Shown one piece after another: positions 50,853 through 55,789 of a stretch of DNA of 64,000 nt; the stretch's first letter is position 1; each line of letters starts with the position of its first letter. The notes below the pieces were generated by a model that was given only the letters and a program-made list of their open reading frames with translations, made no database searches and was not told the DNA's origin. Position numbers and translations under genes: made by a program. The DNA lies in contig MCFE01000420.1 in the NCBI GenBank assembly GCA_002104905.1, positions 1 through 64,000 on the forward strand, given 5' to 3'. Source of the stretch: Basidiobolus meristosporus CBS 931.73 (lineage: Eukaryota; Fungi; Basidiobolomycota).

Positions 50853-51362
50853 CTTTGCCACTTGACTCGACGCCGATTGTATATCGCATTGTAGCGTGGT
50901 AAGTCCCTATCTGACAAGATCTTGTGAAGCGTTACCGAGCATTATCCCATCCGCCTAGCATACATGAGCGATGCTCCTGTGAAACATAGTTACCCTAACT
51001 GCGCTGTGTTGGGTCGTGCTAGGCTAGGGTGAAGGTGCGTGCGTGGATGTTCTTCACCCACACTCCGGAAACAAGCATGCTGCCCTATGTGCAATGCTCG
51101 CTTGATTCCGATGTCCCATGGGAGACTGATTGTCGCCTGACTGATTCGAACGAATGCATCGCTCACTCTGTCTTCACAAGACCCATCCTTGCACATCGCA
51201 ACAGCCACACAGCCACACCGGCGAGCAAGACCTCGCAAGGAGGTACCCTCGACATAGCACCGATGCCGGGAAGGACAGACGCGGGTGTTCCTGCTCGCTC
51301 TTGATCTTACTGAGGGCATTGCACCAATTCGAGGCCAACCTGGACACGTGCTGGGTTGGGCG
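50853..51362. repeat. Left arm of a long inverted repeat flanking GFA1
   Basis: Reverse complement of 55280-55789; core 50864-51341 differs from the right arm at only three positions I could find. Confidence 0.95.
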
Positions 51363-52424
51363 CAGATAATTACCAGGCAAGATGGAAGTTTATCCGGCAT
51401 ATGGCCAGTACAAACAAACATGATGTCCAGCTGATTCAAAGTTACAGTAATTAAATCCGCCGTGTCAGCAAGCAGCTGAAGCCACGTCGGATCAGGCGTC
51501 GACATCTGTGGTGTCATCAGTTCTTGGCGCCGAATCCACCACAAAGGAACAGAACAAGAATTGGGGATTTAGTTTGTATCGCCTACATTTTCGGAACACT
51601 ACCCACGCTGAATCTGTTCAGAGCAGCATGAGACGGGCATCCAGACCTGAAACATTCCTAGATATCCCTTCATTAACTCGCCTAAGAGAGTGCACCAAAT
51701 AAATTGCCTGCCATCCAATCTGACATCAGCCTATTTGTAAGTACTCCCATATCACACCGCCGGCGACTATTTTGCCACCACGCAGTGGAACCATCTGCCC
51801 TACCGATGGTCGCTTCTGAGAAGAATCCATTCAATGGCAATCCATCGCCTGTGGGCAGGTAGGCACCATCCCAATCCAAATCACAGCTGATAAGCAGGTT
51901 GCGAATTGGAGATGTCACGGATCCGAGGGGTGAAATGGGGTGAAATGGGCTTGATCTGATGAAAATCCTTCATGGTATGCTGCACAACAGGCGACTCAAC
52001 ATGATCCGTTACCAGCTTTCTGAAATGTTAAGGAGAAAAAGGGGTTCGCTGAATCATATGATATCGCCTTGATTGGCCCGTATCCAGACTCGGTCATTGA
52101 GTAATACAAAGTATCTCTTCGGATTTGGTCTTGTTGATCCTACTCTAGCGTTCCCAAGTCCCTATACGACTGATCGAAACAATGGAGGCTGCCTCAAAGA
52201 TCGCAAAACACATTGATTAGCTGCACCCAAGGAATTTCAGCCAATTGCATGGTGCCTAGGTATACTGAGCAAGTTAAAGCAAAAATATTATGACGAATCA
52301 TCAGCCTCTTTAGACCCATCAACATGTATCGGTTTCAACAGCAGAGTGTGACTTCTCAGAGTAGTGTACATATTGGGAATAATCCCATCCCCAATCAATC
52401 TTCCCCCTATTCTTAGCCATTCCA

Positions 52425-52499
52425 CTCACAGTCACTCACACCCACCCTCACACCCGCACCCGCACCCACACCCACACCCGCAACCATCGTGTATAAATA
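52425..52499 (+). promoter_or_regulatory. CACCC(A/G) hexamer array and TATA box upstream of GFA1
   Basis: CACACCCACCCTCACACCCGCACCCGCACCCACACCCACACCCGC followed by TATAAATA at 52492-52499, ~90 bp before the ATG. Confidence 0.6.
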
Positions 52500-52588
52500 T
52501 TCCCTCAGCCCCCTTCTCATCCCATCAGTTTACACAAAGTTGTGTGATTAATCCTCCTCGCCCATCGCATCCTAACCACTCCCTGAAT

Positions 52589-54738
52589 ATGTGCGGAATC
52601 TTTGCCTACCTCAACTACCTCGTCGAGAAGGACAGAAAATACATCATCGATACTCTTCTCAACGGCCTCTCCCGACTTGAGTACCGTGGATACGATTCTG
52701 CTGGTAAGTTTTCTGTTGCTAAGCCACCGCCCGCGACCCCCTTGCTTACTCTTGGACTACAGGTTTGGCCATCGATGGCGACAGCGACGATGAGATCTTG
52801 ATCTTCAAGCAAGTTGGCAAGGTGGCCTCCCTTCGTAAGGAGGTGCAGGATCAAGTGAACCTTGATGTGTCCAAAACCTTCCTCAGCCACACCAGCATGG
52901 CTCACACTCGTTGGGCCACTCATGGGCAGCCATCTCCGCTCAACTCCCACCCCCATCGCTCTGACAGCAAAAACGAGTTCACCGTTGTGCACAACGGAAT
53001 CATCACCAATTTCAAGGAGTTGAGGACGGTCCTGGAGAAGAAGGGGCACACATTCGAGTCCGAAACAGACACCGAGGCTATTGCCAAGCTCACGAAGTAC
53101 ATCTTTGATTCGCAGAAATCCCAGAACAAATCCCTCACCTTCACCGACCTCATTAAAAGTGTCTGCAAGGAGTTGGAGGGGGCCTTTGCCCTGATCTTCA
53201 AAAGTGTACACTTCCCCGATGAGGTCGTAGCCACCCGCAGAGGTTCTCCACTGTTGATTGGTGTCAAAACTGAGAAGAAGTTGAAGGCTGACTTCGTTGA
53301 CGTGGAAATTGGGAATCCTGCTGACGAGAACCCTTCGGATCTCCTGAATGAAACCACAGCATCCAACAACTCGCTTCTCAGCCCAACCCACCCATCCTTA
53401 TTCCGTCGTACGGAGTCCCGAGCCTTCCTTAGCGAGGACGGCCTCCCTCAGCCCATCGAGTACTTCCTGGCCTCGGATCCCTCTGCGGTTGTTGAGCACA
53501 CCAAGCGGGTGCTTTACCTAGAGGACGACGATATTGCCCACATTCATGAAGGTGAACTCCACATCCATCGTCTTCGCCGTGACGACAATCTTTCCTCTGT
53601 TCGCTCCATCCAGACATTGGAAATCGAGTTGGCGGCCATCATGAAAGGAAACTTCGACCACTTCATGCAGAAGGAAATCTACGAACAGCCAGAGTCCGTT
53701 GTTAACACCATGAGAGGCCGCGTAAACTTTGAAAGCCGTAAGGTGAATCTTGGTGGCCTCAAAGCCTACCTCTCCACCATACGTCGCTGTAGACGTATTG
53801 TCTTCTCTGCTTGCGGCACCAGTTACCACTCCTGCCTCGCCACCAGGGCCATCTTTGAGGAATTAACCGAAATTCCTGTTTCGGTGGAGTTGGCTTCCGA
53901 TTTCCTGGATCGAAAGACCCCTATCTTCCGAGATGATGTCTGTGTGTTTGTCTCTCAATCTGGGGAAACTGCTGACACCATCTTGGCACTCCGTTATTGC
54001 CTTGAGCGCGGTGCTCTTTGTGTCGGCATTACCAACACAGTTGGATCAACGATCTCTCGCGAGACCCACTGTGGTGTTCATATCAATGCCGGTCCTGAGA
54101 TTGGTGTCGCCAGTACCAAGGCCTATACCTCCCAATATATTGCTCTCCTCATGATGGCGGTCCAGTTGAGTGAAGACCGTACATCCATGACCCAGCGACG
54201 CAATGACATCATCGACGGCCTTCAACAGTTGCCTGATGTGATCAAGAAGGTGCTCCAGCTGGACCAATCTTTGCAACAGCTCTCCAAAGAGGTGTTGTAC
54301 AAGGAGAAGAGTCTCTTGATTATGGGCAGAGGCTTCCAAAACGCCACCTGCTTGGAAGGTGCGTTGAAGATCAAAGAAGTCTCCTACATGCACAGTGAGG
54401 GAATTCTTGCTGGTGAATTGAAGCATGGCCCATTGGCTCTGGTTGACGAAAATATGCCGGTCATCTTGATTATGACCAAAGATTCGTTGTATCCTAAGGT
54501 TCAGAGTGCACTCCAACAAGTCACGGCTAGAAAGGGGCAGCCCATCATTATCTGTAACGATGACGACCACTCCTTGTCTTCCGAGTTCAAGACCATTCCT
54601 GTGCCCGCAATTGTGGACTGTCTCCAAGGGATATTGACCATCATTCCACTTCAACTTCTCTCATACCACCTGGCAGTCATGCACGGGGTTGATGTGGATT
54701 TCCCAAGGAACCTGGCCAAATCTGTTACCGTGGAGTAA
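52589..54738 (+). CDS. GFA1: Glutamine:fructose-6-phosphate amidotransferase (exons 52589-52703, 52763-54738)
   Basis: MCGIFAY...[10 protein letters not shown]|[36 protein letters not shown]-terminal [11 protein letters not shown]; one 59-bp GT-AG intron; intact frame. Confidence 0.98.
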
Positions 54739-55279
54739 GCATCGATGATGCATCGTTCAAAGTACACCATGATGTTTGGCCGACCTGAGCCCTCTAATAA
54801 CCTTAAATTTCTTATCCAATCCTTTGACTCCGTAAAAGAAAATTTCGTTTAGCTTCGATCGTATTTCTCCCCTCCTCTTTACCACCTGGCGCCAGTTCTA
54901 GTGCACATATCTCCCTATATACCATCTAATACGTATCATGAGAATTAAAGGAGTATAATTGATCCCCACTAGTGTGCATCTCATCCGTAGGTAGATTGGA
55001 CGGTGGTCTTTTCGCAGACCGACCATGTTGAGCACTTTGTTGGCAGTGGTGCTGATGTGTGATGATATGCAGTATCGTTGTTAACCAGCGGCTGAAAAGC
55101 GTGATGGCCTATGGACACCAAACCTGAGAATCTTTGCTGCTGACAGGTGAGTAGATGGGATGGATAGATATTATAAAATGGCTGCCAATCACAACTTTGA
55201 TTTTCGATCTACTGATTGTAGAATCTACTTACACCGCTACCTGATAACGGCTAAATCTACTCTGTGTAGGAACCTTGTC

Positions 55280-55789
55280 CACTCAGCTCAACACATGGCG
55301 AGGTTGGCCTCGAATTGGTGCAATGCACTCAGTAAGATCAAGAGCGAGCAGGAACACCCGCGTCTGTCCTTCCCGGCATCGGTGCTATGTCGAGGGTACC
55401 TCCTTGCGAGGTCTTGCTCGCCGGTGTGGCTGTGTGGCTGTTGCGATGTGCAAGGATGGGTCTTGTGAAGACAGAGTGAGCGATGCATTCGTTCGAATCA
55501 GTCAGGCGACAATCAGTCTCCCATGGGACATCGGAATCAAGCGAGCATTGCACATAGGGCAGCATGCTTGTTTCCGGAGTGTGGGTGAAGAACATCCACG
55601 CACACACCTTCACCCTAGCCTAGCACGACCCAACACAGCGCAGTTAGGGTAACTATGTTTCACAGGAGCATCACTCATGTATGCTAGGCGGATGGGATAA
55701 TGCTCGGTAACGCTTCACAAGATCTTGTCAGATAGGGACTTACCACGCTACAATGCGATATACAATCGGCGTCGAGTCGAGTGGTAAAG
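55280..55789. repeat. Right arm of a long inverted repeat flanking GFA1
   Basis: Reverse complement of 50853-51362; the ORF track gives near-identical translations on opposite strands. Confidence 0.95.

Follow-up and report, generated by a model that had tools for sequence, protein, structure and literature searches.

Which known systems does the GFA1 locus resemble?

Segments of DNA held between inverted repeats turn up in several corners of biology. In the flip-flop mating-type switching of the methylotrophic yeasts Ogataea and Komagataella, in the inverted repeats of plastids and in the 2-micron plasmid, homologous recombination turns a segment round, and either isomer is viable. In the staggered-break model from Drosophila, an inverted segment comes to be bounded by inverted copies of DNA that was single-copy at one breakpoint, and such duplications are usually young and decaying. 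The palindromes of primate sex chromosomes, as described in three studies (PMC8327919, PMC3723533, PMC8981503), have arms homogenised by conversion, raised guanine-cytosine (GC) content, orthologues in separated species and, occasionally, an inverted spacer. Among fungi, inversions of spacers from 3.1 kb upwards, by non-allelic homologous recombination between the arms of long inverted repeats, have been validated in Candida albicans by polymerase chain reaction and sequencing (Todd et al. 2019, PMC6591007). Here we consider a 64,000-nucleotide (nt) stretch of Basidiobolus meristosporus CBS 931.73 (contig MCFE01000420.1, positions 1 to 64,000, which we call the window), in which the gene GFA1 stands between two near-identical inverted arms, and we compare it with a counterpart in the distant sister species B. 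ranarum. We think, with a probability of about 0.75, that the locus is a small, old chromosomal palindrome kept by arm-to-arm gene conversion, with a spacer that was once inverted.

Of these systems, the primate palindromes and the repeats of C. albicans come nearest, and each of the four differs from the GFA1 locus in some respects. The Ogataea inversion moves genes in and out of a silencing zone, whereas GFA1 keeps its promoter and its distance to its surroundings, and the 2-micron plasmid has FLP, whereas the GFA1 locus is without a dedicated recombinase. Unlike staggered-break duplications, the copies at GFA1 have persisted in homogenised form through saturation, and B. ranarum, as assembled, has the repeat without the inversion. 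With the primate palindromes (P1-P8 of the human Y chromosome, and those of the X in human, chimpanzee and macaque) the locus shares inverted arms, a unique spacer, concerted arms and raised GC; those arms, however, run from 10 kb to Mb and contain genes, with a spacer that is usually gene-poor, whereas here we have non-coding arms of 0.5-0.8 kb, one gene in the spacer, an ordinary fungal chromosome and a far deeper divergence. What it shares with the long inverted repeats of C. albicans (PMC6591007) is a fungal nuclear setting, two copies of high identity and a spacer of a few kb, although those repeats mostly have open reading frames (ORFs) and produce polymorphisms within a species, whereas the GFA1 inversion is one that we infer between species. 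A full-text search of the literature for inverted repeats in Basidiobolus returned nothing on this topic.

What surrounds GFA1 in the window?

A repeat search of the region from 49 to 58 kb returned a single inverted pair, with arms of 516 nt that are 97% complementary and 3925 nt apart, and in the whole 64-kb window there is no second long inverted repeat comparable to it. Compared base by base, the 478-nt core (50864-51341 against 55301-55778) differs at three sites, 50969, 51038 and 51315, and the other 12 differences are confined to the frayed ends of the arms, in the last 10-20 nt on each side. With its inverted arms of high identity and its unique spacer, the locus has the form of a chromosomal palindrome. 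An initial annotation, made from the letters of this DNA, had described just such a repeat with three core differences, had named an intact GFA1 as the sole gene enclosed and had seen neither a transposase nor a target site duplication; all of this was borne out, respectively by the base-by-base comparison, by the gene model together with Pfam and the public annotation, and by Pfam searches of the ORFs and the gradual fading of the arm ends.

Beyond the frayed ends the likeness fades outwards. When 50703-50802 is aligned locally with 55808-55913 in reverse complement, these outer flanks give a z of 5.2, a score that none of 300 shuffles reached; over its outer ~160 nt the old arm has fallen to some 55-60% identity and is still significantly alike. 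Residual similarity was also looked for in the inner flanks of the two arms, and none was found there; nor did the window, or 66 kb from other loci of B. meristosporus (L006, L007 and L009), yield a further arm copy. The GC content of the arms is 0.54, against 0.42-0.48 in the neighbouring non-coding DNA.

Could the second arm, or the orientation of the unit, be an artefact of the window assembly, as the initial annotation itself had wondered about the arm? We consider this unlikely, because the CBS 931.73 genome comes from PacBio sequencing (PMC7466969), whose reads should span the 4.9-kb unit, and because the independent assembly of B. ranarum has an orthologous repeat.

Does the repeat have a counterpart in a second species?

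The B. ranarum assembly (GCA_040143965.1) has several GFA1 genes, and one of these, on contig JASJQH010007256.1 (L004), where the gene order is ABC, CysMet, GFA1, is enclosed in an inverted repeat with arms at 7521-7849 and 11604-11932 (329 nt, 91%), the second of which stops at the contig end. The full arm is longer. A search with the full database protein P0125 returned B. ranarum PIG-V proteins of 540-545 aa, the closest of which (P0133) is 80-83% identical to the PIG-V of the window and lies on the 3.2-kb contig JASJQH010002688 (L008). The last 135 nt of that contig (3023-3157) repeat positions 7072-7206 of L004, at 94.8% overall and at 100% over the final 110 nt, and because of this the B. 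ranarum arm extends over about 7072-7849, that is at least 778 nt, with copies that are 92-100% alike.

The placement of the repeat is very similar in the two species. The inner edge of the upstream arm lies 1.10 kb from the ATG in B. ranarum and 1.24 kb in B. meristosporus, the downstream arm starts 506 nt past the stop codon in the former and 546 nt in the latter, and the two species share the aligned motif at which the arm has its inner boundary (…GCCAAC), as well as the conserved block that both arms contain. Two further loci are important for what follows, namely L001, a second copy of the region in B. ranarum, and L009 (MCFE01000182.1), a paralogous segment in B. meristosporus. No repeat was found at L001, and a sensitive search found no homologue of the arm at either locus.

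Two side observations concern the B. ranarum genes themselves. In L004 a 1-nt deletion in a T-run (9610-9640) puts a frameshift into the repeat-flanked GFA1, which is the slowest-evolving one of that species, and the annotation is accordingly split into two models of 211 and 365 aa; the deletion may be a mistake in the sequence, or the gene may have become a pseudogene very recently. On contig JASJQH010000896.1 (L003), a dispersed GFA1 paralogue (P0002, 677-3737) copies the L004 unit in part. Its homology to L004 sets in at 7299, within the upstream arm, and stops at the stop codon; it lacks ~700 nt of the proximal upstream DNA and any second arm, and is fast-evolving (branch 0.29).

What has kept the two arms alike?

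In an alignment of the four arm sequences, two per species (A2), the left and right arm bodies are 99% identical in B. meristosporus and 92% in B. ranarum, and between the species identity drops to 45-46%, which is the level of noise and the background for neutral DNA between these two species. The GFA1 orthologues tell us how far apart the species are: by NG86 their synonymous divergence (dS) is undefined through saturation, third-position identity is 0.45-0.47, and nonsynonymous divergence (dN) is 0.02-0.03. We are looking, in other words, at an orthologous palindrome whose arms are more alike within each species than between them, and such a pattern is the textbook mark of an old palindrome in which gene conversion runs from arm to arm. 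Because the repeat has the same place, the same source DNA and the same orientation in the two species, and is alike within but not between them, we take it, judging from sequence comparison, to be older than the split of B. meristosporus and B. ranarum, and the arms appear to have been homogenised in each lineage by conversion from arm to arm. The homogenised tract is a different one in each species, namely the inner part of the arm in B. meristosporus and the outer part in B. ranarum, where the inner third is diverging. GC content points in the same direction, since the homogenised arm of B. ranarum has 0.43 against 0.34-0.42 in its flanks, and arms above their flanks in both species fit GC-biased conversion, which at a single locus is a weak indication. 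GC-biased conversion has been described for primate palindromes (PMC8981503).

Might the two species have acquired their repeats independently, or might the arms be two copies of a non-coding RNA gene, pointing inwards at GFA1, as was first proposed as one option? We regard either as very improbable. Independent duplications would indeed give arm bodies that are unalignable between species, as these are, but convergence would also have to account for a common source segment, a common target position and orientation, the shared inner boundary at …GCCAAC and an orthologous block within the arms. As for RNA genes, most of the arm is not conserved between the species, only ~100 nt being so, and no Rfam match at a permissive threshold and no tRNA by ARAGORN was found in the region; with no folding signal either (see below), we find that option unsupported.

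Has the spacer been turned round?

Four related loci allow the orientation of GFA1 to be compared. In the window the order is PIG-V>, GFA1>, <ABC, with arrowheads for direction, and in B. ranarum it is PIG-V>, <GFA1, CysMet>, <ABC, so that the 3' end of the B. ranarum ABC gene faces the 5' end of GFA1. At L001 the PIG-V and ABC flanks match the minus strand of the window while GFA1 matches the plus strand, and L004 has the same strand opposition of GFA1 relative to ABC. L009 reads ThrE, INCENP, PIG-V>, <GFA1 (as a decayed pseudogene), CysMet>, <ABC; the pseudogene (12111-13167, minus strand, between PIG-V and CysMet) covers residues 131-523 at 31-37% identity (E 4e-32). GFA1 and PIG-V are thus convergent in three of the four loci and co-directional in the window only.

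The four loci fall into two pairs. L009 and L001 are collinear (INCENP-PIG-V-CysMet-ABC) and share a 49-nt non-coding block at 92%, the CysMet gene of L009 is 81.5% identical to that of L001 against 76.6% to that of L004, and a PIG-V tree joins the window to L008 and L001 to L009 with 61-67% support. On these comparisons the region would have been duplicated before the species split into a type A, which has the repeat (the window, and L008 with L004), and a type B, which has none (L001 and L009). Losses have been reciprocal, in that L009 has lost its GFA1 and the window its CysMet, of which tblastn finds no trace. When the copy number and synteny of GFA1 are checked, as the initial annotation had suggested, the gene turns out not to be single-copy, with at least three GFA1 genes in B. 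meristosporus (P0122 and the further copies P0123 and P0124), and the neighbourhood PIG-V - GFA1 - CysMet - ABC turns out to be ancestral.

This neighbourhood bears on another early proposal, a non-autonomous DNA transposon of the Pack-MULE or foldback kind that captured GFA1 between long terminal inverted repeats. The arm-gene-arm shape is what such an element would produce, and it is the sole point in favour of a proposal that we find hardly credible. All four related loci, whether they have the repeat or not, place GFA1 between PIG-V and CysMet/ABC, and this ancestral placing is common to both species and to both of the old paralogous segments; the DNA of the arms comes from the local region upstream of GFA1; and no further arm copies are present in the window or in L006, L007 and L009. 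Nor is there a target site duplication, the frayed arm ends fading into decayed inverted similarity with no direct repeat at the ends, and the ORFs of the arms and those of 55.8-60.4 kb have no Pfam match of any kind, so none to a transposase or recombinase.

Because three of the four loci are convergent, with L009 and L001 as the outgroup, the convergent arrangement is best taken as ancestral and that of the window as derived. The 3.9-kb spacer would then have been turned at least once, most simply by recombination between the arms, and the breakpoints are bracketed by 49761-51883 and 54960-60374, with one arm inside each bracket.

Several points weigh against this history. Breakpoints can be placed no more finely than these brackets, because the non-coding DNA is saturated between the species, and it is we who infer that they lie within the arms. 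Outside the homogenised part, the left outer extension of the window aligns with L004 at about 7333-7380, the B. ranarum outer flank giving a z of 6.0 with the left side of the window and 1.3 with the right, but both B. ranarum arms are identical there, so the crossover cannot be placed from this. A block of ~314 nt (L004 7207-7520) is single in the B. ranarum assembly, with two other contig ends stopping exactly at its edges; the two arms probably do not differ there and were collapsed into one. The orientation of L004 then depends on how the assembler threaded the contig, and if this was mis-threaded, the derived orientation could be common to both loci that bear the repeat, and repeat and inversion could have arisen together. 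The contrast in orientation between the window and the type-B loci is independent of that threading. Contrary to synteny, L001 joins L004 and L003 in the GFA1 nucleotide tree (bootstrap 88); dS between L001 and L004 is 1.65 and both are saturated against the window, and the conflict could come from conversion between paralogues in B. ranarum or from species-specific codon usage. The support of the PIG-V tree is also modest. Finally, selection may be needed for a 0.5-kb repeat to last while divergence goes to saturation, and the neutral account supplies none.

It is at this point that a different origin for the repeat deserves a hearing, in which the inversion itself left the repeat as a by-product, the DNA at one breakpoint (the far-upstream DNA of GFA1) having been duplicated by staggered breaks with fill-in or by template switching during replication, with conversion following later. 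In both species the left arm is contiguous with the 5' region of GFA1, as a 5'-staggered break predicts, the repeat-free loci L001 and L009 are uninverted, and the B. ranarum orientation hinges, as we have said, on threading through a probably collapsed block. Against this, L004 as assembled combines the repeat with the ancestral orientation, which would call for a second, arm-mediated flip back, and no single-copy homologue of the arm at the type-B loci shows the state before duplication. We consider the by-product account quite unlikely.

We therefore keep to a palindrome that came first and a spacer that turned later, and would put the steps as follows. Some 0.5-0.8 kb of the far-upstream non-coding DNA of GFA1 would have been duplicated in inverted orientation, ~0.5 kb downstream of the gene, before the species split. 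Non-crossover outcomes of recombination (gene conversion) would keep the arms 92-100% alike while their neutral surroundings saturate, and at least one crossover, by non-allelic homologous recombination between the arms, would flip the 3.9-kb spacer and so reverse GFA1 relative to its neighbours. With the whole transcription unit in the spacer, and the same arm sequence on either side in either state, such a flip would be a functionally silent isomerisation.

The contents of the spacer are relevant here. Blocks upstream of GFA1 that are conserved with B. ranarum (51883-52181, 52282-52348 and 52492-52565) and a TATA box, TATAAATA, at 52492-52499 all lie within it. The flip is not expected to switch GFA1, since promoter and terminator travel with the gene, and we would regard it as neutral, an isomerisation and not an on/off switch. 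The idea of an invertible or gene-converting cassette around a cell-wall gene, which was the first of the options raised at the outset, therefore holds up as history, in that the arms are concerted and the orientation differs, and fails as a working switch, in that the promoter is within the spacer. A site-specific invertible switch was considered separately and rejected, as there is no invertase (Pfam finds no recombinase domain in the ORFs of the unit or of the adjacent 4.5 kb) and the promoter is not separated from its gene.

Is any part of the arm conserved between species?

Only one part of the arm is conserved between the species. It matches L004 7432-7535 at 70% over 105 nt (E 3e-11), rising to 82% over the first 55 nt, and includes a perfect 24-nt match, CTATCTGACAAGATCTTGTGAAGC, at 50907-50930, which itself contains a 12-nt palindrome, ACAAGATCTTGT. 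The 24-nt element has two matches in the window, against 0.02 expected, and recurs with 3 mismatches upstream of the B. ranarum paralogue at L003 (945-963). The block is likely to be under constraint, because it has been kept in non-coding DNA that is otherwise saturated, and on the simplest reading it may be a distal cis-regulatory element of GFA1, a candidate of which the repeat puts a second copy downstream of the gene. RNA folding of the block, on both strands and in both species, gave no signal (z -0.3 to +1.1), and a metagenome scan with a 23-nt conserved motif gave no match. The motif TGAAAC occurs three to four times per arm (659 nt each, 50700-51358 and 55284-55942), against 0.81 per kb for the window as a whole. 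Among these is a tandem TGAAAC, GTTTCAGTTTCAGTTTC, in the outer, decayed part of the arm. We take the motif to resemble the pheromone-response element of yeast Ste12, which is a lead and not a test.

Such observations invite the thought that the repeat has been kept by selection, either because the paired distal module (24-nt element plus TGAAAC) works as an enhancer or insulator or because the locus is held ready for amplification under cell-wall stress. The 24-nt match and the ~100-nt block have survived saturation and are met again upstream of a third copy of GFA1, TGAAAC is enriched in the arms, and the repeat-bearing GFA1 is the slowest-evolving (branch 0.03 against 0.22-0.29), the repeat-less copies being faster or, as in L009, dead. 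In C. albicans, according to PMC7371428, long inverted repeats flank amplifications selected by drugs. But about 400 of the ~500 nt of the arm are unconserved between the species, so that only a small part could be constrained in sequence; the homogenised stretches are not the same in the two species; and gene conversion alone can preserve palindromes. On balance we think selection unlikely, and conversion remains our preferred explanation for the likeness of the arms.

What else does the window contain?

The positions of the arms, the gene and its neighbours are collected in Table 1. GFA1 consists of exon 1 (52589-52703), a 59-nt GT-AG intron (52704-52762) and exon 2 (52763-54738), and its 696-aa product, of the same length as ORX89816.1 and with the N-terminus MCGIFAY, has the make-up of GFA1/GlmS proteins, that is, a class-II glutamine amidotransferase from Cys2 and two SIS domains. 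Pfam recognises the GATase domain (GATase_6/7) and SIS in two stretches, and a protein search puts exon 2 at 76-95% identity to fungal GFA1 proteins. These searches were run with exon 2 alone and later with the full database protein P0122, which maps to contig MCFE01000420.1 of assembly GCA_002104905.1 at the very coordinates of the gene in the window. The public annotation has no gene other than GFA1 between PIG-V and the ABC gene.

Table 1. Features of the GFA1 locus, in positions of the window
Feature	Positions	Strand	Remarks
PIG-V/GPI18, GPI mannosyltransferase 2	47761-49761	+	left flanking marker; same direction as GFA1 here, convergent in three related loci
Left arm, decayed outer extension	50703-50842	+	old arm DNA no longer homogenised; carries GGTTTCAGTTTCAGTTTC motif
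Left arm	50843-51358	+	516 nt; core 50864-51341; 1.2-1.7 kb 5' of GFA1 ATG
Conserved block, left arm	50883-50987	+	only arm part conserved between species
Spacer 5' part, GFA1 upstream region	51359-52588	+	from sequence and comparison with B. ranarum
GFA1, glutamine--fructose-6-phosphate transaminase	52589-54738	+	ORX89816.1 (P0122)
Spacer 3' part, GFA1 3' flank	54739-55283	+	block 54910-54960 conserved with L004
Right arm	55284-55799	-	reverse complement of left arm; begins 546 nt past GFA1 stop codon
Conserved block, mirror in right arm	55655-55759	-	24-mer at 55712-55735
Right arm, decayed outer extension	55800-55913	-	from local alignment
ABCA-type half transporter	60374-62798	-	right flanking marker; 3' end faces GFA1 3' end

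Other features of the window are worth recording in their own right. From the right arm to the ABC gene, 4.6 kb (55800-60373) are without a gene, at the place that CysMet occupies in B. ranarum; GC falls to 0.35-0.42 at 56-59 kb, and two fragments, 57256-57312 and 57982-58096, have matches of 79-81% to a repeat near 29339-29466. The first ~30 kb of the window (1-30000) are AT-rich (GC 0.37-0.43) and hold many diverged families of direct repeats (73-98% identity, at spacings of 1.4-11.6 kb), so that this part looks like old copies, of transposons or satellite-like, nested together and contrasts sharply with the gene-bearing half. On the other side of the palindrome, a 44-nt non-coding block some 210-280 nt past the PIG-V stop codon (49974-50017, equivalent to L008 2451-2494) is 80% identical between the species, and probably belongs to the 3' untranslated region or terminator of PIG-V.

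What might the locus mean for Basidiobolus?

Taken alone, the locus is ordinary recombination biology. What sets it apart is that, in the nuclear genome of a fungus, a short inverted repeat of non-coding DNA has evolved in concert to an unusual depth, with an inversion that can be polarised, and the persistence of the arms through saturation raises the question of whether conversion has been sufficient or selection has been at work. A bolder idea, and in our view a long shot, is that Basidiobolus may keep a whole class of gene-sized palindromes by selection, with a regulatory element on both sides of the gene and with spacers that are still flipping measurably in cultures of today or are ready for amplification under stress, GFA1 being one member; if true, genes would be packaged genome-wide in a manner that is undescribed in fungi. 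Whatever becomes of that idea, the locus is well suited to measuring how often arms recombine with each other in mitosis in an early-diverging fungus, and it flags a candidate distal regulatory element of a gene of the chitin pathway.

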